The notes beneath the pieces are model-generated. The model made no database searches. It was not told the DNA's origin and saw only the letters and a program-made list of their open reading frames with translations. A stretch of 64,000 nucleotides of DNA, taken from NCBI GenBank assembly GCA_029953675.1, contig JAMWBK010000002.1, forward strand, positions 1,116,001-1,180,000, written 5' to 3'. The position numbers were made by a program, and so were the translations under genes. Positions 19,218 through 60,249 of this stretch are shown one piece after another. Positions within the stretch are counted from its first letter, which is position 1, and the number at the start of each line of letters is the position of its first letter. Source of the DNA: Rhodosorus marinus CCMP1338 (lineage: Eukaryota > Plantae > Rhodophyta).

Positions 19218-20114
19218 ATGGCGCTGACGATTTTCAGGTATCCGTTTGAGGTGGACTGCCACCCGCGGAGGCATCATCGGATGAGAAGGACGCAATCCGA
19301 GACTGAAGATGAGTACACATTCAATCTGGTTATGCCGGGTGTAAATCGTGACGCTGTGAAGGTGGAGGTGGTTAGGAGAAAGCTGAAGATTTCGTTGACA
19401 AGGGACGGGGCATCGGAAGCGCAGTGGTTGTCGCTCCCGAAGTACGCCGACCGTTCTGCAATCGCTGCTAAGGCGAAAAATGGGGTGCTTGAAATTACGA
19501 TTAAGAAGAAGAGTAAGGATCCGACGAAGAAGATTGAGTTGCAAGATAACATTGAGTTGAAAGACGGTGCTTATAAGCTCGACTATTCAGTACCCGGCGC
19601 TGGGGCAAATGATGTCCAAGTGTCCATCACCGGAGCTCGCTTAACAATTAATGCGCAAAGCGGAAATATGGACTTCTTCGACGATTTCAGGAGAACCCTC
19701 AGCACTCCGAGCGACGCGGATCTGGCAAACGTGAGCGCCGCCCTTATGGATGGACTCTTGCTGATCCAAATCCCGAAGCTAGAGCCCGTTACTGTACCGG
19801 TTGAGAAAGGTCAGGCTACGGAGAGCGATGAGCTGTACGTGGCTTACTTCAGAACTCCTGGGATTTCTGCGGAAAATATTGAGGTCACAAGAGTGGGGAG
19901 AAAAGTAGAAGTTGAAGCTAAACAGTCCAACTCCATGAGGGACAATGACTACTATTCAGCGGTCGCGACAGATTTCTCCGAATGCATCTACCTTCCAGAG
20001 TCGGTCGACCTTGAGAACACCAGAGCAGTGGCTGAGAACGGCGTCCTGGCTATTACTGCCCCAGTGCTTGAGACCGAAAGGCCACGGGAAGTTGCCGTCC
20101 AAAGCGAGGCATAG
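19218..20114 (+). CDS. Small heat-shock (HSP20) protein with three tandem alpha-crystallin domains, intronless, 298 aa
   Basis: Three copies of the ACD pattern: PGV/PGA/PGI in beta3-4 and AKAKNGVLEITIKK, AALMDGLLLIQIPK, AVAENGVLAITAP in beta8-9. HSE and TATA lie upstream. Confidence 0.9.
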   Translation: MALTIFRYPFEVDCHPRRHHRMRRTQSETEDEYTFNLVMPGVNRDAVKVEVVRRKLKISLTRDGASEAQWLSLPKYADRSAIAAKAKNGVLEITIKKKSKDPTKKIELQDNIELKDGAYKLDYSVPGAGANDVQVSITGARLTINAQSGNMDFFDDFRRTLSTPSDADLANVSAALMDGLLLIQIPKLEPVTVPVEKGQATESDELYVAYFRTPGISAENIEVTRVGRKVEVEAKQSNSMRDNDYYSAVATDFSECIYLPESVDLENTRAVAENGVLAITAPVLETERPREVAVQSEA

Positions 20115-24980: not shown

Positions 24981-26442
24981 TGTTGGAAGAGGTTCAGTCC
25001 ACCGGTTTCCTACTTATATTATATACAAACAACTAGATCATTGTTAAGAAACTTCCTATTTCTGTATGCAAGAGTCATTTGAAAACAACATCTGATCGCC
25101 CCCATCCTCCCTCGTTGTGCAAGCCAACTCCGACCTCTTCCAAATGGGAGTTGGGGTGGGTGGGCCTTGTACAAAGAGGTCCCCCCGCATCCCGAGAATC
25201 ACAGGTGATTAGTGCGACGCTCAATAGTTCGAGACTTTACATTAACCTATGGATTCTTCAGAGGCTATAGGCTCTGAAAGTATTGAGGCGCGTGCTATCT
25301 GTGCACGTTGAGAGACAATGCTGTTCTACTACACCGACAACGTTGGGAAGAGCTGACATGTAAACGCGCAATGAGGTATTCCCTCTCGGAATGTGAGATT
25401 CTTGAGCCTACTGATCACACTTGCTAAACGTCTTACAGGATTCGTCTTATGGTTGATCCATGTTTGAGGTCGACATGAGGGAAACAAAACTGGATCTAGA
25501 TCGTTCGAGGTGTTGCACAGTGAGCTCTGGAGTTATAGGCTAGATGGCAAGTTCTGAGATCTTATCATTTTTACACGAGTATTTCACACAACCTGAAACA
25601 GCACCACAGAAGAAGTTTCCCAATGACGCCGGTTTGTACCGAAACGTAAGTCCATGCCGGTCCTTGTTGAACCGCTTGAGGATATCCAAACGCAAACGAC
25701 CAGTGACAGGTTTTTCACTGTGTCACCAAATTCTGAGACTTCTCCTCATGCCTAAAAACCTCTAGCGAACGGCTTCACCCAGAAGTAACCGTCAGCAATC
25801 TGAGAATTTTTGGAGTACAAGGAGAACCAGTTAGTTATGGTCAGGCTCTCAGAGCGGTCGCCATGCGAAAGAGCAATAAAATCGGTTCATTCCATAACAA
25901 AAGTTCAAGCGAGCAAAAGCGCTGATGGAGTCGAATGGCAGTCCAGCTGAACGTCATTGACAAGGTACCTCTGGTGATCAGCTCGGAAGATTGTGTTAAG
26001 CTGAGAGAATCTAGCGCGCGCAATGCGCCCACATCGGCTTATCCTAGACTAGAAGTAGGTACCAGCGGTTGGAGTCAGGAATATAGCCGTCGTCATCGTC
26101 CCATGCTTGGCTATCTAAGTGCTTTGCTACTGATCATTGCCCTCGTAAGCAAAAACCCCAACGAGGAAAGAAACACAGAATCTTCCTCCCTTTGTTGTAC
26201 GATCCTGCCGCAAGCGGGCTGGACATATTTGCTTGTTACGATTCTTGGGGTTTGAGCTTGATGCAATTTCAAATAAACGTCACAGTGACGGGCCTGGATG
26301 AGAGGAGCAGATGCACCCAATTATCCACTAATCGAGGTACGCAAAGGTCCCGTTGAACGACAACCCAATAGGAGCTACAGAATGTACATGTTAACGGTTA
26401 AATGAAAAAAAGGTCTAAATAAAGACTTGCAATAATACATAC

Positions 26443-26776
26443 CATCGTCATCCTCCTCAGCCCACAACAAACTGCAAGCGTCAGTTAACCCAGCTCCTCG
26501 ACTCACGCTCAACGAACATGAGCTTCGAGTACACAACGCAATACTCCGAGCATACAAGACCCTCTGCGCTGTGAAACCATCGGTTCTCATACCTTGCCTC
26601 AAAGCTCTGTCCATAACCAGCGCATCCAAATGATTCTCAGAAAACCAACCAGGTGCAGAATTCAATATTCCAACACCCGCTTACCTATGGTGCACACCCA
26701 TGCCTCCAGTCCTACGAGTTGCACCGCTCGGCATGTTCAGGGTCCCACGGACCAATCTACCTATACCACTCCTCAT
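26443..26776 (-). CDS. Small presequence-like protein with acidic tail, family copy A (exons 26685-26776, 26443-26606; last exon unknown)
   Basis: MRSGIGRLVRGTLNMPSGATRRTGGMGVHH-R|ALRQ...SCSLSVSRGAGLTDACSLLWAEEDDD-G|gtatgt. Strong donors gtaagc and gtatgt; phases 2 then 1 are consistent. Confidence 0.7.
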
Positions 26777-28260
26777 CCTCCACCTAGAACAAAAAAAATT
26801 ACAACAAACAAACAAACAGAGATCGACCCTAGTCGACACAAGCCAGACCCAAAACCCCTAAAAACCTTTTCAGCAACAAAGTCAAAATAATCGGCCTCGC
26901 TTTACTCCAAAAAGACTCCAGAAACGAGAAATGCGAAAAGAAGAAACTTTTGCTTTTATCCAAACAGACGATCATACAAGGAACCCCAAATGGCCTCACC
27001 CTCCTCATCCTCCCTTCCCTCCCCCCCCCCCGAGCTCTATTGCTCCCTCTTTCTACAATATTCACATGCCCTATCAACTCCATTTGCCATTGGAGATCCA
27101 TGCCAATTGCCTTCTTTCCAATACAAACCAACGAAATACTATAACTCCTTCTCAATTCCTCTATTTTTCATTTTTACCAATCAAACACAGAATCCTTATT
27201 ATTAGTTTCATTATTCAGTAATATTTGGTCAGATCGAGATAGAGGGGTGACAATCCATTCAATCCAAACTTTTGTTTAAAATTTAAATATAAGAATCCTT
27301 TTTTGCCATGTGAAGATCTACATACCCTTTGAAGAATATGGTAAATTAAATCATTTTTATTACTTTTTTAAATGATTTTTAAATTGAATAAAACATATTT
27401 TAGCAATATGCACCAAATTGATTTTTAATTCATATTTATGGAAATGTGTTTTTATAGAACTTTAGGCTTAGCTATAGGATTTTCATTATTGGTCGACTTG
27501 AGCAAACGGTCCCCAGATCGCTATATAATGATTGGTTAGGTCGTCCGTGGAAAAATTCTATTTGAGAGAATTATTAGATAGAAGGAGCATATGGTTCGCT
27601 TGCTTCAACAGTCAGAATGTCTGTGAGTGGTGAACTCATTGAGCGATAGATGGATAAGGACGAATCATGTATCTTGTGACAATATTAGTGTAAACTCGAT
27701 TAGCAGCCGGTCAACTTGGGGAGAAGCTCGTATTGAGGACGACTACCAAAGTTCGAATGTTCGAGCGAGGCACACGTTTCCAACAGGCGATAAATTAGGA
27801 TCCACAAACAAATTTGTTGAGTATCGCTACACAGTTGAAGTTTACTTCCTGGTCGTCTTCTGTGTCTACATGGGTCTGCGCTTAAGCTTGTCTGCTGAAG
27901 TACGTGAGCGATGCCGAGAAAATTCTCCACGCCAACAGAACAGATCAAGCCGTGAATAAATAAACACATGACGACAGCAAGCGATCCAGAAACCAGGTCA
28001 GTACATGAGACGCAAGAGCACAAGAAACAGATACCGATCTGTGTCAGCTATGTCAACTTCGATCGTCGGTCAAAAAAGAAGCAGATTCTCCATCTGAGCT
28101 CAAGTAGCATCTAACAGCCACAAGGTAATCGGTCCAAATCCCAGTTCTGCTTCAATAGGATCACTACAAGTAGAACACTCCGTGGGCTACTCCTCCAAAG
28201 GTTGGAGGTGACGGAGAAAGACTCTTGATCTCGATACAAGAAAATGCTTGCAGGGTCGGG

Positions 28261-28560
28261 CTAAGTACCGTCTTCATCCTCGACATCACCATCAAGTAGA
28301 GCATCAACTAGCCCTGAACTCCTTCCCTTTGAAACGGATAACGAAGACGCATCGCCAATCGCCGCTTGCGAGATACACTTCAGCTCCGGTAAGGACTCAG
28401 CAGAGAGCGTTGAAAAACGAGCCTTCGCAGAGCATGCAGATGTAGAGCTACTAGCACTCATCAAATACCTCGACCCTCGCAGGGTAGAGTCCCGAAGCCT
28501 AGATCTCCTCATCGCAGAAACTCCTAAACGTGACATCCTCAAAAATGCCCTACTACTCAT
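28261..28560 (-). CDS. Small presequence-like protein with acidic tail, family copy B (99 aa, single exon)
   Basis: MSSRAFLRMSRLGVSAMRRSRLR...ASSLSVSKGRSSGLVDALLDGDVEDEDGT*. Confidence 0.75.
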   Translation of the reverse strand: MSSRAFLRMSRLGVSAMRRSRLRDSTLRGSRYLMSASSSTSACSAKARFSTLSAESLPELKCISQAAIGDASSLSVSKGRSSGLVDALLDGDVEDEDGT

Positions 28561-29574
28561 CTTGGCCGCCGAAAACGAAAAATAAAACTTGCTCGCAGCA
28601 CCACCGATCGCCCCCAATCTCTAAAAAACTTTGACCCCCGAGCGCACTTTCGGCCTTTCTACAAACCCCGAGACCCAACCAACCCAGAAAAAAAAAACAC
28701 TTCGGCTTACTCAAATCCAGATCGCGACGCATGTGATTGTCCTCCTTTATCAAACCCTTCCTAAATGATTCGAAGTATTCTAAGCAAAGTCCAATATCCT
28801 AAAAAACAGTTATCCACCTATTTGTATCACGTACGCATTTCACAAAGCGACCTCACTCTCCGCACCCCGCTCTTTTTCTTCCTCCGCTACGGCCAAATGC
28901 ACAGACTCCGCAGAGACGATCAACATCGCCTCAAGCTCTCAACGAAAACTTCAAACAGACACTTGTCAAACAAACACTGGCATATACGTCAAATTAAGAC
29001 ACGTGGCAATGCTTGTTTGAATTATTGTTATGACAGTCTGTCCCGATCGTCGAATGAACTTCCGGCGGAGTCTAATTTATCTAAAAAAAGAGGGGTTAGT
29101 TGTGGCGTTAGCTTTCGAAAGCGGGGGTGGGTGATCTTCTGTCTCGATCAACGAGGCCGAGAGCGCTATAGCCATCTACACGCAAGATCAAGAGCAATGG
29201 TACCGGCCTAGCTAGACAATTTTCTACGTTCCCCGGTCCCCTAAAAAGGAATCTGTCCGTGTCGGAGGAGGGGAGCTCCTGTGCGTCTCGTGTATCGGGC
29301 TAGTTGACTTGTGCTTACTCAGCGGGGAGCCAATACGTACATCTACGTACATCAAGGGCTGCTCCGTTATTTCTGAGGTCTCAAGTTGCAAACAGCTCTC
29401 ACAGTCCCTTCATATGATCTTCTCCTCCTGGTATGCGCAAGGACATGAATGTGTTTGTATTCGAAGCTCATGGTTCGCTCCAACCCCCCTTGCCCTCATC
29501 CCCCCCCAGGTACTAGCAAAGTTGTCTAATCAACTACATAGAACATATCAAATCACTTTTGTTCGGAAGCTCAC

Positions 29575-29961
29575 CTTCGTCCTCCCCCTCGGCAAGCATC
29601 GCAACTTCAGCAAGACCGTGACTAGTGGTAGTAGAAGAGCACCTTAGAACCGTGGAAGGCCGCACTACTTGTAGTCCTGCCCCTGCTAGATCCGCAACTT
29701 GATTAACTTTAACTGCGTTCACGGCCGATGCCCTTGGACCGGCCAACAACGAACTGAAAAAGGCGCCAAACAAAAAACAAAACCGCGTCTGAGTACGCCA
29801 TGCCTCTTCAGACCATTAGAGGCCGTCCAGAGACCAAGCAGCTATGAAAACTGATGCTCTCACCTCGCAGCAACCCCCCTCGACAATCGTCGCGTAGGAG
29901 CGCTCCCTCGAACAATCGAGCTTGTTGCCCTCGACAAAGACCTCATCGTTGCAGCTCTCAT
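29575..29961 (-). CDS. Small presequence-like protein with acidic tail, family copy C (exons 29864-29961, 29575-29753; last exon unknown)
   Basis: MRAATMRSLSRATSSIVRGSAPTRRLSRGVAA-S|SLLAGPR...CSSTTTSHGLAEVAMLAEGEDE-G|gtgagc. Donor gtgaga, acceptor tttttcag; phases 2 then 1. Confidence 0.72.
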
Positions 29962-31144
29962 CCTGAGTTTTCGTTGTGTTTCAATTTTTCTTCCGGCTTA
30001 AGTCGAACACCTTCAAAACAGATTTATCTCCTGATGGCCTGCCCTCTTGTCGCTGATTGTGTACCAAGATCGCCGATCATGTAAGTTCTCTCCGGTGGCA
30101 ATTCCCGCTTAGATGAGGATCAGAATTTGCTTTTAGCCCTGATTTCGGGAGTGACTACCCAGTCATTCCCAAGCCTGCCGGGTTGTGCATCTTGTTGAAC
30201 TCGTTGAGGGGAGCCTTTTGTTGTCTTCTGTGTGACAGAGTTGCCTGCTCTCGTGTTCACTCCGGATGGTGACGAAAGACGAGAACGCTAACCCCAGACC
30301 TTTCTTGGATCCGAACAAATCCATTCGGTGAGCAAGGGATCAGGGCTGATTGAGAAGTACATTCACGAGTAGCTTCCTGAAGGGAGATAAAGGCATCCGA
30401 GTTTTCAAACGAGGATTCTGCGGAGAAATCCATCACTATCACAGTTTGTAAACCCCGGTAGTGAGGATGTTGTTATTAGCGAAGCAGCTGAAGCTCCGAT
30501 CAGTTGGAAGCTGTGATCTGTGGGCTTGACGAGATCAATTTCTCTGTGGAAAGGTATCAGAAACAAAAGAAAAGTAGACGTGTCCCTGTCGCGCTTGTGT
30601 CATATCCTCAGACCGAGACATCGCAGAATGGGAAAGGGTCGCAGCATAGGAAATACGAGCATGGCCAAAGAAGCACAGTGGACTGAGACGTAATCTCTCG
30701 TTTCTCTCACCGCCCGAGCCTCCAGGACGAAATTTATTGAGGTCTTCTCGATCGTGGCGCAGGGACATTGTAAACCGGTCGACAAACGACAGGTGTTCGA
30801 CAGATCCTTCAAGAAGCTGAAAGAAAACAGTTGTTTCAAATTCATGCAGTCCATACACGGCAGGAGTAACCATATTCAGTCACCATTATATTAAATATTG
30901 AAACAAAATGCGACATATTGAATAATGACTGATACGACAGGAATTACCCAGTTGTGTAACTCATGCCTTTCTCTACATGCAAATTATTCGGAAATAGGTA
31001 GCATATCAAACCAGAAACGTGAAAGAAAATAGATTAAGAACTGGCTGGAAAGTAGTTCATTGGATTAAGTTGTCATTTTTTTTTTCAAAGAGAAATATTA
31101 GATTTGATGTGGAGAACGTAAATGCTTTGTAAATGGTGCTGGTT

Positions 31145-36969: not shown

Positions 36970-38787
36970 CTACTGGAGTTTGATGACTGTTGGCTCTCGG
37001 TGGACTTCATCCTCAGAACCAAGCACTCGCTCCTTGAAGTCGCGCATAGCGTTCTCCCCTCCGCTCTGCAGTTGGTGGATTCGTTCCATATCCTCCTCAT
37101 AGTTGAAGGCACCGCACCATCTATGATAGCGGCTCTCCTCCGGCTTCGTGGTATAGCAGAGCGGGTTGACATCGTCTCCACCAAGTGATTCATATTCATA
37201 GTTGGAGCACGAGCACCCGGTGGCGGGGTCGTTAAGCATATCCTTCCAAGCACTACACTCCCCGAAGGCAGCGCACACGCTGCCGTAGTTGGCAACTACT
37301 TCGCACATATTGTTCGAGGTCGCTTTCGCCCTTTTCGGCTCCATCACTATGGGCCTAAGGCCAAGAAACTCAAATGCCTTGGTCATTTGCCCAACGGAGT
37401 CTTCCAAGTAGTCCTCGTACGCCATTTCCAAGTAGCAACCCGTTTCCTCCGTTAGGATGCTTACGGCTTTCCTGACGTATTGATCCACTCTATGGAAGCG
37501 GACCATGATACAGTGCAGGTCTCTGTTATCAATTACATCGAACGAACATCCCACACCAACCGCACATCGGTCATCCACGCCACTACTCGCCTCAATCCCT
37601 CCGACCGCTGTATTGTCACCAAGATAGTAGTAGGGGTACCTCCCCACCGACCACTTGAAGACGTTTTCCCGATAGTTCCAAATGACACGCAGGTTGAAAT
37701 CGTGCACAAGCTTCTTAAAAGCATCTGGGGCTTTTACCACGGTCACCGGGCTCATCTTAAAGCCTGGCAGTTTGTTCCCAGGATTGGTTTCCGAGGTGTT
37801 TGTTCGCTTGGAGAAATAGTCCCTAGCCCATGCAACTGCATCGGCGGGATTGAGCTCCTCAAAGTCGAAGCTGTTGAGAGGCTCAAAGTTGTTTAGGTCG
37901 TAGTGAACATCGGGATGTTGAGTGAGCTGAGACATCATTGCAGTACCTAAGTAATTGTAGACGGCGAAGCGAAAACGACCTTGTCAACATCGGATACCCA
38001 AAGCATCCAATGCTGAGCAATACTTACTTCCAGTGTGAGCGGACATCATAAACAAGTATCCTCCGGCCTTTGGCAGGGATGCTGCACACCCAGGAACAGT
38101 TTTCCTGTTCTCGCTACGATCTGGGACGGGCAGCGGTCGCGAGTGTGTCACTGGGGCAGTGAACCCAGGCATAGATGAGTTTGGCGTACTGCTCTGCTGA
38201 CTGGAGTCAGCGGTCGAGGAAATTTCGCTTGTTTCCGCTGAAATGGGTTCTTGTCCTTGCGTGATTCCAAGCGCAGGCTCCTCTACTACAGTGTTATTCG
38301 TGGTAGGCTCCTCTACTACAGTGTTATTCGTGGCAGGCTCCTCTGCTACGGTGTTATTCGTGGCAGCTTCCTCTGCTCTCGTGTTATTCGCGGCAGGCTC
38401 CTCTGCTATAGTGTCATTCGTAGCAGGCACCTCCTCCGCCGGACTGGGAATAGGGTCAATCGTATCCTCCTCGGGTTTTGCCCCAAGCTGTCCCGGGAGC
38501 TCCCAAGCGTCAATGTCGTCGGATGCCTCCGGTGTCACAACGTCAGGCTTATTCTCAAATGCCTTTTCATCTTCCAGCTTTTCCGAACCTAGCTCGCCCA
38601 CAGTGCCCTCCGTTCTCTCTGTAGATCCTGCTGTCAGCGAATCGTAGTTAGTGGGCGCAGTGTCCCAGCCTCGAACTGGTGATACGGATAGCATGGCAAA
38701 TAGCCCCAGGAAAATCACCACCACAAACATCATCCCCTTACTTCTCATTGCTGGTCGTTCCAAGAGCATGTCGGCTTTAGCGTCCAT
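36970..38787 (-). CDS. Type II membrane sulfotransferase with repeat-rich stem (2 exons)
   Basis: N-terminal TM segment, then SAHTGS|TAMMSQLTQHPDV (5'-PSB-like), GFKM and VIWNYRENVFKWSV (3'-PB-like). The intron splits the Ser codon in phase 1. Confidence 0.8.
38275..38436 (-). repeat. 30-bp coding repeat x5 (EEP(A/T)TNNTV(V/A)) in the sulfotransferase stem
   Basis: aggctcctct(a/g)cta..gtgttattcg(t/c)gg units. Confidence 0.95.
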
Positions 38788-50569: not shown

Positions 50570-51709
50570 ATGATGAGGCGTGGCTCGTTGATGGCAAAGG
50601 GTAGGTTCAGAGGTGGCGGCAGATTTATGAATGCCAATCAGTCACGGTTCGCTCTGGGATGTTTCGTGTTTGGATGTATGCTGATTGTGCTCAACCGAGC
50701 GTTTAACAAAGCTGGTGAGGTAGCGAAGGGGGAGAACAGGCCAGAAGCCGCGAATGAGATATCAGCTGGAGAGCCTCCCTCAGCAATGATTCTTGGTGAC
50801 AGCAGAACTGGAGTAGTCGTCGAGGTTGTCGGAAAACCTGTTGCTTCTCTCGAACTGGAGCGTGGGAAGCGTCCAATTGGAATTCTGATGCTGCTCCCAG
50901 GATGCCATCACACGGCCTTGGACTTCTTTCCGAAGGGACGGCTTTGCGACACCTGTATTGGCTTACCAGCAGAGACATCGATTATCAGGGTTGCAGTGGG
51001 GAAGGGTCTCTTTCCCGTGGCTGTTTCTCCAACAGGCGTCTGTTGGAACACGGAGAAGGATTCAGATGACTTGCAGCGCATATCACAAACGTTGAACGAG
51101 CTGATCGTGGGACAGTCGCTTAGCAATCTACCGCTTTTCGTGTTCGGTGCATCTTCCGGAGGTGTGATGGCATCAGTCCTTCCTAGCTTGTTCAACGTCT
51201 CGGGCTTGGTAATACAGATTGCCTCGAGCGCTTCTGAGGACCTACTCAGCCACGAACACAGTATTACTGGGAAGTACCCTCCAAGTGTCTACATGCACAT
51301 GCCACGAGACCTAGTCACAGCTGCTCGCGTAGAAGATGACCTTGAGGTGCTTGATCGCATACAGGCGCCATCGAAGGAGATTAGATTGCTTCCGAAGCAA
51401 ATCGACGAAAGTTTCTTTTCCTCGCAAGCGGAGGGAATCACTTCTGAAGAATCCAAGACAATGTTCGCCGCGCTAAAAGAAGTCGGTGTTTTGGATGCAG
51501 ACGGCAGGCTAAACTCCGACCCCAGAACGTCGAGTTGGAGGGAGACTTTGAGCAAATCGGTCCCTCGCCTGGCGCATGACGATGGATTCAGACCTGATGA
51601 ATCCCCAGTGGCGGAGCTCCTAAACATTGCCTATGCGCAACATGAGTTGTCCGCGGACGGAATTGAGCAAGCCCTGGAATTCCTTATTCTGAAGCATCGC
51701 GAGAACTAG
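50570..51709 (+). CDS. Membrane-anchored alpha/beta-hydrolase-fold protein, intronless, 379 aa
   Basis: TM segment near the N-terminus, LLPGCHH, CIGLP, nucleophile elbow VFGASSGG and late AYAQHE motif. Confidence 0.8.
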   Translation: MMRRGSLMAKGRFRGGGRFMNANQSRFALGCFVFGCMLIVLNRAFNKAGEVAKGENRPEAANEISAGEPPSAMILGDSRTGVVVEVVGKPVASLELERGKRPIGILMLLPGCHHTALDFFPKGRLCDTCIGLPAETSIIRVAVGKGLFPVAVSPTGVCWNTEKDSDDLQRISQTLNELIVGQSLSNLPLFVFGASSGGVMASVLPSLFNVSGLVIQIASSASEDLLSHEHSITGKYPPSVYMHMPRDLVTAARVEDDLEVLDRIQAPSKEIRLLPKQIDESFFSSQAEGITSEESKTMFAALKEVGVLDADGRLNSDPRTSSWRETLSKSVPRLAHDDGFRPDESPVAELLNIAYAQHELSADGIEQALEFLILKHREN

Positions 51710-52363: not shown

Positions 52364-53472
52364 TTAGGGCGAGATATATCGCCCAAACGCATCGCGAAGC
52401 GCCCTGTCCAACCCATGCACAATGTTGCTGAGCCCCACCCAGTGAAGTACTTTGAACGGGAGTAGAAGGATAGGATACTGCAGTGGGAGTGGGCCCAACC
52501 TGTAATCAGTCATCGCTGACGCAACGATCCCCTCAACAACAATCCTGTCGTTCTGTGTGTGCAGATTTCTCACAATGTCAACAACTTTCTCAACCGCAAC
52601 AATCTTCGCAGGCTGAAGCGAGGCATCAGGATCGGACACTGTCAACAAAGAGTCACCAACAACCAGATCGCCTGCACGTTTTCGATTCCAGTCGCTCGTA
52701 TACACTAGGTGCGAGTGAGTCAGTCGCAACCACTGATCCTTTTGATCGCTTGCCAAGTACCTTATCGCGAGCATCTCATGCAACGCTTCGTCCCTGTCAT
52801 GCTGAACAAGAAAAACTTCCGAAAACACTCGCCTTCCGTTTTGAACAGACTCTACTCTGTCTCCGACTTTCACTTGGTCAACTCTGACACTCTTTTCCTG
52901 GCCATCTTGAAGAATCCGTACGCTTGATGATCCCCCAAAGCATACCGGATCAGTACTATAAGAGGACAGGACCGGGCCTCCCCTATGAGACACAAGGTAA
53001 ATCGTCCCGCTTTAGACCCAAGTCTTGACTTTCGTCTAGGCTATCTCTCATTTATCTGTGGATTGAACGCTTACGTAGAGCCAGTAAGCGTGAAGTTGAC
53101 CAGCATCTGGATGTCTAGTGAGGATCCATTCTGAAACTGCTTGATCTGGAAATCAAGCACGGTGTCACACTCTCCAAATACTGAGGTGCTCGACTCGCCC
53201 GGCGTAAATGCTACGGTCATGGTTGTGACTTCCTGGGTACAATTGAGCCCAGTTACTTCCAACATATTAATATCTGCCAGGACATCGCCTCCATTGGATA
53301 TCTCCTGCGTTGGAAACGGAATTGTGATCTGCTCCGGACATCCCTCTCCATTTGGGCTATCGCATGCGGAAAGCTGAAACGTATTAAACACATCGCGGTA
53401 CTGCAGTACCCCCAAACAAAGTTCCAGAATCACGAACAGAACAATCAGCCTATATACCCATCGCGTCAACAT
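52364..53472 (-). CDS. Secreted Hint (Hog-type) autoprocessing protein, 2 exons
   Basis: Signal peptide plus ~115-aa ectodomain (53073-53472) splices in phase 2 to ...DPV-CFGGSSSV, VKVGDRV, SEV, LRLTHSHLVY, AGDLVVGD, IVVEGIVAS and an amphipathic C-terminal tail. Confidence 0.9.
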
Positions 53473-57993: not shown

Positions 57994-58198
57994 TTGCTAC
58001 TGAGTACAGGCTAAAGTGTGAAGAATGTGGGGTGACTTTGGCTCCACGGGATCCCGCGTTGCTACTGAGTACAGGCTAAGTGTGAAGAATGGGTGGTGAC
58101 TTTGGCTCCACGGGATCCCGTGTTGCTACTGAGTACAGGCTAAACTGTGAAGAATGGGTGACTTTGGCTCCACGGGATCCCGTGTAGCCAAAGTCACC
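57994..58198. repeat. Three ~64-bp tandem repeats with palindromic core, terminating in a 42-bp near-perfect palindrome
   Basis: Units start at 57994, 58059 and 58123. Core CACGGGATCCCG(T/C)G. 58157-58169 pairs with 58186-58198. Confidence 0.95.
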
Positions 58199-58948
58199 AC
58201 CGGTCGTATCTAAAACGCATCTTCGAATACTTTCTTAGGAGGTACTTCCATCATTTACGGTGTCCTGGAGTGCTGCCGTATCGCGGATATGAACACATCC
58301 TCCTCGTAGTCACTGCTCACAGAAGGGGAGAAGAGTAGGAGAGGCACTGGAGGAATGTCTCCTTCGCTCACGCGGCAGAACGAGCTCCTCCCCAAACGTG
58401 GGGATCCCATTCACCTTCCCATCAAACGGAGCTCCACCATTGGCTTCGGAATCACCTGTGGCTGCAAACCATCACTGGAAAAAACCTGCCAAATCGTATG
58501 GCTAACAAAGCTACTCCTTATCCAGCTAGTCCAAGCTAACAAACCCCATCACAGTCTAACTAACATGGCGCGCCCTACTGTCCCAGATTATCTACACAAG
58601 TACCCCCACTCGGTGAACTCCAGATGCCAAATAAAGTTGAATAATTCAATATCCATGTGATTCCTAGAACGTAAAATAATCATTTTCATGAAAGAATAGA
58701 TTGTAAAATAAATATTTTATAATGGATGTGCATTACTGAAATCAATAAACCAGTTATGATCCATGTGTTTTGGGACAGCTGAAAATGTTGGTTTGATCGC
58801 GATGAATATGGGCGTGAACGCTATGGCCGTGTTATGGTTGCACGGCGTTGAAGTGGATGGTATTGGAGCTCGCGCGTAGATGTGTACATATGTGAATACA
58901 CAGGTCTTAGCAGAAAATAGGAGCGTTCTTGATTAACTGTTATTCAAG

Positions 58949-59368
58949 ATGAGAGGCCAAAGCGCGGCTCGAGCGATGAGGATGTATTGTCGATCTGCTG
59001 CGATGAAATCGGTGAAGACCAAGTTGAGGTCGGCAGCATCTCGGGATCTTGTGAGGTGAGGAGAGGGGTTTGCGGCGAGAAGGGCTGTAGATTTCTTCAA
59101 GTTTTTCTTCATTTGCTGAAAGATTGCATGTATTCGCTTGCTTTCTGTTTTGTGTTTGTTTTCTTGAACAGGGTGAGTTCGATGAGATCTTTGGCGATGA
59201 TGCGTGCGGTCAAAAAGCCCTCGGAAAGTAACTGCTTTGTCAATGACACCAATCTGCCTCACTGCATAGGAGGAAACGTGGCTGTGGATCAGGATGGATC
59301 TTCGACTGTTCCAGCGTCGAGAGGTTTAGGCATAGTGTTGGAAGGCTGTGGTGAAGGAGAAGACGATG
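58949..59368 (+). CDS. Small presequence-like protein with acidic tail, family copy D (exons 58949-59055, 59172-59368; last exon unknown)
   Basis: MRGQSAARAMRMYCRSAAMKSVKTKLRSAASRDLV-R|VSSMRS...GSSTVPASRGLGIVLEGCGEGEDD-G|gtacgg. Phases 2 then 1. Confidence 0.72.
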
Positions 59369-60249
59369 GTACGGATCCAACCAGGCGAACGAACTTAACG
59401 CTTTCATCCAGATTGGGGAGGAAGGAGTTTTCAATCCGTTCTCAGCGTAGTTCCCATTGTCTTCTCTTTTTTGTGGATTTTTCGGCATCTATAGAATCAG
59501 TAACAAGCTCGAGGTATCCAAGCTAACATGAATTCCACCGCCTCTCCCTCTTCCCCCCCCCCCTACCCCCCCCTTCGCCCCACTGTACGAAACTCTTCAA
59601 AACAGAGTTGGAGAAGAAAAGATCGCAGACCGAACGTATTTCAGATACGTGATGGAAGAAAGAGCTAGAGAGCGGGAGCGTGAGAGCAAAAGGAGTGGCC
59701 AGAAGAGTTTTCTTCCGAGTCTTGTTTTCAGTTTGATAATTACTTGTTTAGTTTGCTCCGCTGTTGTTTCAAATGATTGCTGCGTATACAAAAGAGATCC
59801 ATTCAATTCTGATCGTCTTCCGCTTGAGGCGCTATGTATGGTTTCAACGAAGTCCGAAAACATATTTTGCCTCTCAAAAGTTATAAGATTTTGATTGACG
59901 AAGTGTTGCGCTCATTGACATCGAGAAAATAAGGACATGCACACAAAGAAAAACTCAACCCAAGGGTTGAAGACCCGGCCCCTCGCTTTGTGACTCTTCC
60001 TTATTTTGATCCACGCACTGGACGCTTTGCGCTTTGACACATTTGCAGGGTCAATAAAATGCTGCAAGACGCCCCCTTCTATAAATCCTCTCGTGCACGT
60101 GTGTAAACCTTATCCAATTGGCCCCCTGCTGCCAGAAACACGCAGAGATGGTCCGAGAATCCCGACTGTCTACTCACTCACGGGTTTCATCTCAACGCAC
60201 TAGTTCTACATTATTTGCACTGCTTCTTCTTCACGTGTTCCTCTCCATG

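Follow-up and report, generated by a model that had tools for sequence, protein, structure and literature searches.

Do the short, co-oriented open reading frames (ORFs) clustered at one nuclear locus of the red alga Rhodosorus marinus CCMP1338, together with a similar ORF farther along, form a genuine family of protein-coding genes, and if so, where in the cell might the products act? The stretch analyzed here (hereafter, the window; 64,000 nucleotides, nt) belongs to nuclear contig JAMWBK010000002.1 of assembly GCA_029953675.1, at approximately 1116001-1180000. A first-pass annotation, made from the window sequence, had placed three mini-genes, denoted A, B and C, within 3.5 kb (26443-29961) and a fourth, D, from 58949, and had read them as cryptic paralogues encoding mitochondrial micropeptides. 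A, B and C lie on the minus strand, whereas D is on the plus strand, ~29 kb from the A-B-C tandem array. We found that all four are nuclear, spliceosomally spliced, expressed and protein-coding genes, most probably paralogous, which are conserved between strains and yield products of 86-111 amino acids (aa). Each protein consists of three parts, namely, a basic, acid-free, amphipathic N-terminus, a variable middle and a conserved C-terminal module.

The evidence of expression comes from six transcript contigs of two other Rhodosorus strains, S1 (IMG 3300017118) and S2 (IMG 3300016967), that were aligned to the window. The start codons, exon-1 donors, exon-2 acceptors and tails proposed for A, B, C and D were all reproduced from the sequence. 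The first intron of A, C and D is removed in the transcripts at the proposed positions; it lies in phase 2 and interrupts an AG|N codon, number 31 in A, 33 in C and 36 in D, as borne out by the spliced transcripts and the proteins of the other Rhodosorus strains.

The 3' ends of the genes required revision. In all four genes, exon 2 (the first coding exon in B) ends at a phase-1 donor, GAN G|GT[AG]. The glycine with which the tails were thought to terminate is always followed by GT, so that the G probably represents the first base of a split codon and there is no C-terminal glycine; in the transcripts, the phase-1 G|GT donor is joined to a third exon in every gene, starting at 26048 (A), 27894 (B), 29080 (C) and 59495 (D). 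With this exon added, the proposed gene ends no longer hold. The transcript-supported products comprise 86 aa for A (ending ...EEDDDV before the stop), 106 aa for B (...EDEDADKLKRRPM), 109 aa for C (...GEDEDKLDSAGSSFDDRDRLS) and 111 aa for D (...GEDDESVTSSRYPS). The ending of B in GT directly before a stop, as originally proposed, is real in an intron-retained isoform (P0004), but the spliced isoform carries the last exon.

Such variation is not limited to B. Retention of intron 2 was seen in B, C and D among the transcripts and cluster members. In C, use of a proximal acceptor leads to GGEDHM(YR)KGL and a stop, with the frame kept between strains through a 6-nt indel, and in the distal last coding exon of this gene, 16 of the 17 residues are invariant across three strains. 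An alternative last exon of A, reached by exon skipping to an acceptor at 25801, gives a product ending ...DDDDC (P0022). When retained, intron 2 of D in the window is in frame and stop-free (a 179-aa ORF), and both forms end ESVTSSRYPS; the retained isoforms of D from the sister strains (P0015-P0017) meet a stop inside the intron. Alternative last exons and intron retention add 1-17 residues to the C-terminus, and more in the retained-intron isoforms of D. The constant part of the protein thus ends at the acidic run at the phase-1 intron, and the residues that follow depend on the isoform. The arrangement shows clearly how a conserved phase-1 intron can set off a constant acidic C-terminus from last exons that vary. 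A motif common to intron 2 of A, B and D (TAG|..TCCYATTG), from which a third exon had been guessed, was discarded: the transcripts splice elsewhere, and the S1 acceptor is TTG.

The description of the genes as cryptic was not borne out. The GenBank gene models of the contig, built with BRAKER2 and RNA-seq hints, already include A (NDN08_007658, hypothetical protein, 100 aa, 26328-26776), B (hypothetical protein, 91 aa, 28261-28536) and C (NDN08_007660, hypothetical protein, 96 aa, 29399-29946). The last exon of the A model (26375-26328, encoding APIGLSFNGTFAYLD and a stop) uses an internal acceptor inside intron 2 and was not seen in the sister-strain transcripts. The reading frame of B is open from an earlier ATG, at 28560, to 28261. 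At D, the 74-aa model (58802-59231, plus strand) stops at a TAA in a different frame from that of exon 2 in the transcripts, so that it lacks the tail; it appears to be a mis-prediction, the transcript-supported coding sequence (CDS) being 58949-59055 + 59172-59368 + 59495-59526. Altogether, four public gene models can be corrected: A and the main C isoform in their true 3' exons, B and C in the first ATG, and D throughout. The revised structures are collected in the table.

Table. Exons and introns of genes A-D in window coordinates, as revised with the sister-strain transcripts (L) and proteins (P).
Feature	Position	Strand	Details
Gene A, coding exon 1	26685..26776	-	ATG at 26776; presequence-like; 5' untranslated region (UTR) to at least 27013 (L005/L007 align 27013-26685)
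Gene A, intron 1	26607..26684	-	78 nt, GT..AG, phase 2, Arg AG|A split at codon 31; P0008/P0009 span the junction
Gene A, exon 2	26443..26606	-	ends ...SLSVSRGAGLTDACSLLWAEEDDD + G|, phase-1 donor GTATGT; 87% identity to S1/S2 transcripts
Gene A, intron 2	26049..26442	-	394 nt
Gene A, CDS end in exon 3	26044..26048	-	G|TC = Val, then TAG; 3' UTR to ~25552
Gene B, first coding exon	28269..28560	-	ATG at 28560 (GenBank start 28536); no intron 1; ends ...SLSVSKGRSSGLVDALLDGDVEDED + G|, donor GTACTT
Gene B, intron	27895..28268	-	374 nt, phase 1; retained in S1 transcript L008, giving ...EDEDGT and stop
Gene B, last coding exon	27866..27894	-	G|CA = Ala, DKLKRRPM, stop; L006 1316-1363, P0007/P0020
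Gene C, coding exon 1	29864..29961	-	ATG at 29961 (GenBank start 29946)
Gene C, intron 1	29754..29863	-	110 nt, phase 2, Ser AG|T split at codon 33
Gene C, exon 2	29575..29753	-	ends ...CSSTTTSHGLAEVAMLAEGEDE + G|, donor GTGAGC
Gene C, intron 2	29081..29574	-	494 nt, phase 1; retained in L010
Gene C, alternative last exon in intron 2	29399-29427	-	GGEDHMKGL, stop; equals the GenBank model, isoform P0024
Gene C, distal last coding exon	29028..29080	-	G|AT = Asp, KLDSAGSSFDDRDRLS, stop
Gene D, coding exon 1	58949..59055	+	transcript L009
Gene D, intron 1	59056..59171	+	116 nt, phase 2, Arg AG|G split at codon 36; P0005/P0019 span the junction
Gene D, exon 2	59172..59368	+	ends ...GSSTVPASRGLGIVLEGCGEGEDD + G|, donor GTACGG
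Gene D, intron 2	59369..59494	+	126 nt, phase 1
Gene D, last coding exon	59495..59526	+	G|AA = Glu, SVTSSRYPS, stop; P0005, P0006, P0018, P0019

The comparison between strains bears directly on the coding status of these ORFs. The ratio of nonsynonymous to synonymous substitution rates (dN/dS), estimated by the Nei-Gojobori method for the window against the two strains, was 0.30-0.74 in 10 of 10 comparisons, with dS values of 0.17-0.31. All 11 orthologous ORFs are intact, without a single frameshift, and all indels comprise whole codons. The variable columns are distributed unevenly among codon positions 1, 2 and 3 (68, 54 and 97, respectively; chi-square p=0.0014). Between strains, the coding parts are 84-92% identical with zero gap columns, compared to ~70-73% identity and 15-35 gap columns each in the UTRs and the C-B spacer. 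Because dN/dS is below 1, frameshifts are absent and the third positions are the most variable, we judge the ORFs to be coding, and we conclude that they are most likely translated and subject to moderate purifying selection.

The kinship among the four genes is less obvious than their coding status. In comparisons of the orthologue groups with hhalign, A-B (expect value E=0.004), B-C (E=0.03), B-D (E=0.08) and A-C (E=0.3) all align at the tails, in register, and the tail is kept between strains. To this extent, the proposed alignment of the tails stands, but the pairwise statistics are weak (Smith-Waterman z = 0.6-2.6), and A-D (E=0.11) and C-D (E=0.066) align through 8-residue stretches away from the tails. 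The S[RKH]G motif, which had been put forward for the tail, is not invariant, varying even among orthologues (SVYRE, SKA, SHS); the tail can be restated as an [ST]-rich segment followed by G-[LI]-x-[DE]-[AV]..L and then an acidic run. When the profile of each group was compared to the profile of the rest, the scores for A, B, C and D were 24.4, 42.1, 20.2 and 18.9 (E of 7e-4, 4e-7, 0.0065 and 0.013, respectively), each exceeding the reversed control and all 100 column shuffles (null means ~10-11, maxima 15-18). We also searched the six-frame ORF pieces of the window, 2124 in total, with leave-one-group-out hidden Markov models (HMMs); with full-length models, B (E=6e-7) and A (E=0.011) were the best non-training matches.

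The gene structures add to the profile comparisons. The donor context GAN G|GT with its phase-1 intron is common to all four genes, and the phase-2 intron to A, C and D; the exon sizes are similar, the start context ARGATGAG is shared, and A, B and C are arranged in tandem, co-oriented, within 3.5 kb. Paralogy appears to be the best, moderately supported reading of these similarities, with D as the least certain member. The view of the four as real, spliced, protein-coding paralogues is thus sustained by the group-against-rest scores, the coding constraint and the transcripts.

When 5.8 billion proteins were searched with a profile built from A-D, there were 11 matches, all 11 from Rhodosorus: three GenBank proteins and transcript-derived proteins from MMETSP/EukProt and the JGI copies of the MMETSP transcriptomes. 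The orthologue sets consist of P0008 and P0009 (A), P0004 and P0007 (B), P0010 and P0011 (C), and P0005 and P0006 (D). An exhaustive HMMER search with an 8-sequence profile against 1.84 billion cluster representatives recovered only four Rhodosorus clusters and three spurious proteins (P0012-P0014, a kinase and two TPR/CHAT proteins), which are long repeat proteins matching through 6-14 stretches and were rejected as relatives. Pfam gave only sub-threshold noise and no family for A-D, and a sequence search of the PDB returned nothing below E=0.2. Residues 61-88 of B (~28296-28380, minus strand) match DUF7466 in both orthologues (E=0.001 and 0.0085), at 16-19 bits against a cutoff of 27; the match occurs in B only and we attribute it to chance. 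A search for literature on DUF7466 found none.

With relatives detectable only in the genus Rhodosorus, A-D appear to be a genuine but ordinary orphan small-protein family. Like other orphan families that arise by tandem duplication, they are confined to one genus, short, predicted to be disordered, tandem and co-oriented, with dN/dS of 0.3-0.7. Unlike such orphans, the Rhodosorus genes keep two spliceosomal introns with fixed phases and an organelle-type N-terminus. The conserved introns and phases, combined with the maintained N-terminus, therefore suggest that the genes have an established function and are not very recent de novo creations.

As the first-pass annotation had stated, the N-termini are basic and nearly acid-free, with 7-9 Arg/Lys versus 0-1 Asp/Glu among the first 35 residues; the first acidic residue is found at position 24-54, and the maximum helical hydrophobic moment of the N-terminus is 0.71-0.75. 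The last 35 residues are net acidic. A transmembrane or hydrophobic segment was not found (maximum Kyte-Doolittle value over 19 residues <1). AlphaFold2, run on the family alignment, gave a mean predicted local distance difference test score (pLDDT) of 55.7, a predicted template modelling score (pTM) of 0.13 and no secondary structure; intrinsic disorder is thus predicted for the proteins. An Arg-rich, acid-free N-terminus with a high helical moment is classic for matrix presequences, and this composition and amphipathicity make mitochondrial import of A-D a plausible prediction.

The explanation that we favor, with a probability of about 0.5, starts from these features. Under this model, the N-terminus would be a matrix-targeting presequence, and the proteins would enter mitochondria, where they would probably be cleaved. 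What remains, a disordered, acidic-tailed peptide of ~45-70 aa, would act through the short linear motif of its tail, which might bind a basic surface of a partner mitochondrial complex, the proteins serving as small accessory or regulatory subunits rather than as enzymes. The family could have originated by tandem duplication in the Rhodosorus or Stylonematophyceae lineage, or from an older small protein with a presequence, after divergence that has erased the resemblance. The CCMP1338 nuclear genome was reported in the publication that first described minicircular mitochondrial genomes in Stylonematophyceae; the Rhodosorus mitogenome is minicircular, gene-poor and highly divergent, and for many missing genes the nuclear-encoded complement of Stylonematophyceae mitochondria could not be traced (PMC10250338). 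Should A-D prove to be mitochondrial, they would count among the first lineage-specific components to be recognized in these mitochondria; otherwise, they are an ordinary orphan small-protein family of the kind present in every newly sequenced protist genome.

Several observations weigh against this model or the kinship on which it builds. Conservation is as high in the N-termini as in the tails (invariant columns make up 62-81% of the N-terminal thirds versus 56-82% of the C-terminal thirds), which is atypical for cleaved presequences. Patron and Waller are said to have found in 2007 that rhodophyte plastid transit peptides usually contain an aromatic residue, usually Phe, near the N-terminus; B has Phe6 in all strains, so that plastid targeting is possible for this protein. 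No particular complex is singled out by the evidence as the one to which the proteins belong. Among the 2124 ORF pieces, the full-length leave-one-out HMMs did not recover C and D, and the tail-only versions, a check proposed for the conserved tail, did not recover the left-out paralogue at a significant level. The membership of D, the least certain, relies on the hhalign E=0.013 and on the gene structure. Finally, the transcripts are those of strains other than CCMP1338.

Among the rival explanations, the one closest to the favored model accepts the coding family and moves it out of the mitochondrion. The proteins could be plastid-targeted, or could be uncleaved disordered proteins of the cytosol or nucleus, for example, chaperone-like or nucleic-acid-associated. 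The strong conservation of the N-termini, the predicted disorder of the entire proteins and the invariant Phe6 of B are all compatible with this alternative. However, an N-terminal aromatic residue is missing from A and C (in D, there is Tyr13, which becomes Tyr4 if counted from the second ATG), and the Arg-rich, acid-free N-termini of high helical moment fit it poorly, so we consider it unlikely but deserving of serious attention. It is far harder to believe that the four are unrelated young genes whose tails converged on a low-complexity pattern (Ser-rich, then acidic) picked by eye. The low Smith-Waterman scores, the outcome of the tail-only HMMs and the drifting S[RKH]G residues are what such convergence would produce, but it would leave the group-against-rest scores above all shuffles, the identical intron phases and donor context, the A-B-C tandem, the similar lengths and the common start context as coincidences, and we regard it as very improbable. 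Least credible of all is the idea that the transcripts are non-coding, or host an intronic small or regulatory RNA, and that the ORFs are incidental. It might draw on the common retention of introns, the shortness of the ORFs, the predicted disorder and the fairly high identity of the second introns between strains (81-87%; 87% in B and 81% in C). This identity, however, matches the synonymous rate and hence suggests roughly neutral evolution, for which no special explanation is necessary, and dN/dS below 1 in every pair, intact frames and the excess of third-position changes speak for translation. The 87% identity of the B intron had led us to consider a host of a small nucleolar RNA (snoRNA) or another structured RNA; we rejected it, as no Rfam match was found at the gathering score or E<=1 and the intron folds no better than shuffled sequence (z +0.88 and +0.43).

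The remaining rival, compatible with the favored mitochondrial model, is that A-D are deeply diverged members of the plant NFD6/NOXY2 group, which would then predate the split between red algae and green plants. The first-pass annotation had noted that the architecture recalls these proteins, and so it does with respect to size, presequence-like N-terminus and intron phases 2 then 1. NFD6 (NUCLEAR FUSION DEFECTIVE 6) and NOXY2 (NONRESPONDING TO OXYLIPINS 2), which are found in land-plant mitochondria, are also precursors of ~90-110 aa with an Arg/Ser/Ala-rich N-terminus and no Pfam domain; for the latter reason, DUF7466 provides no bridge to plants. In one Sinapis alba NFD6 gene, there are three coding exons; intron 1 splits an Arg codon (AG|A) in phase 2 where the presequence ends, and intron 2 is a phase-1 intron (GAA G|GTACCT) five codons before the stop. 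In this plant gene, the only one compared and not a NOXY2 gene, the order and phases of the introns are those of A, C and D (B has the second intron), and the last coding exon is similarly tiny. Plant NFD6 isoforms, too, vary after the second intron. There are look-alike motifs as well: LSVSR[RG], P.E.SC, E[DG]C and the C-terminal DDV of A. On the other hand, the Rhodosorus proteins differ from the plant proteins in the long acidic run before the last intron, and the aligned motifs do not match up with the positions of the introns. With regard to biology, mitochondrial aggregation is described in noxy2 mutants (PMC8358658, citing Vellosillo 2013).

The profile comparisons, for which we retrieved 471 NFD6 and 182 NOXY2 proteins (so named by NCBI and UniProt) and aligned 30 and 26 of them, do not support homology. 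As a yardstick, NFD6 and NOXY2 match each other at hhalign E=9.7e-8 through the core LLP[LY]H[ST]A..SA.LTS.L, which is absent from all Rhodosorus proteins compared. Against NFD6, the Rhodosorus family profile gives E=0.22 and the A, B and C groups give E 0.13-0.63, and every group compared to NOXY2 or to the combined plant profile gives E 0.04-0.57, within the range of the shuffles. The match of the D group to NFD6 goes furthest, with a score of 22.7 (P=0.0023) above 60 of 60 shuffles, but comes largely from the presequence; with the mature parts only, what is left is a 12-column match at E=0.014, and with the wider profile the match of D weakens to E=0.039. Likewise, the NFD6 HMM ranked D first of 2138 targets, although at 13 bits, with an alignment that is mostly presequence and with the D orthologues lower, and the mature-only NFD6 HMM found no match. 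The exhaustive search of the 1.84 billion representatives, at a severe threshold, returned no plant protein. Membership in the plant group is accordingly improbable, despite the real resemblance in architecture.

The products of C and B might also be connected at the level of mRNA. C and B lie on one assembled transcript in both strains (L006 and L008), the distal exon of C continuing into B; L006 is fully spliced, and L008 has a further ~880 nt 5' of C. The two ORFs recur on a single contig of an independent MMETSP assembly, Transcript_2337, as g.3452 (C) and g.3453 (B). All these are short-read assemblies, and the joint contigs (window 27777-30886, minus strand) could represent a bicistronic mRNA, read-through or merged overlapping UTRs. 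The spacer between the C stop and the B ATG is 467 nt long and contains four ATGs, which makes leaky scanning less likely. Gallaher and colleagues reportedly described in 2021 polycistronic nuclear mRNAs with small ORFs in green algae. The Rhodosorus case is similar in that C and B share one spliced contig, but differs in being seen only in short-read assembly, where read-through or overlapping UTRs could account for it. The more ambitious version of the favored model, in which imported disordered micro-proteins are new accessory subunits or regulators of the Rhodosorus mitochondrion, with C and B made from a bicistronic mRNA, is at present a long shot.

Within the C-B spacer, a 31-nt block at 28954-28984 (minus strand; TATGCCAGTGTTTGTTTGACAAGTGTCTGTT) is 100% identical between the window and S1, compared to ~70% in the surrounding spacer, and more conserved blocks are found at ~28730-28790 and ~28840-28860. 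These blocks may be promoter or regulatory elements of B. The long 5' leader of C in S1 (L008/L010 1-282; window 30535-30873, minus strand) contains an ORF whose sequence agrees in part with a window ORF (YGLHEFE..FF.L.GSV..L.FVD) before the two diverge; it could represent an upstream gene, an upstream ORF (uORF) or UTR.

Elsewhere in the window, a 64-nt tandem repeat in three copies with 91% matches (57994-58185) is located ~760 nt upstream of gene D. Another tandem repeat, with a 30-nt unit in 5.4 copies (38273-38433), lies in a 267-aa minus-strand ORF (37984-38787), where it encodes an EEPATNNTV-type motif in a protein with one hydrophobic N-terminal segment. The window also contains a single-exon ORF at 50570-51709, a 338-aa gene with a Hint domain (Hedgehog/intein-type, PF01079) at 52364-53472 (minus strand; L001 4795-5903), and a 298-aa small heat-shock protein gene at 19218-20114 (plus strand), with two Pfam HSP20 matches on one product.

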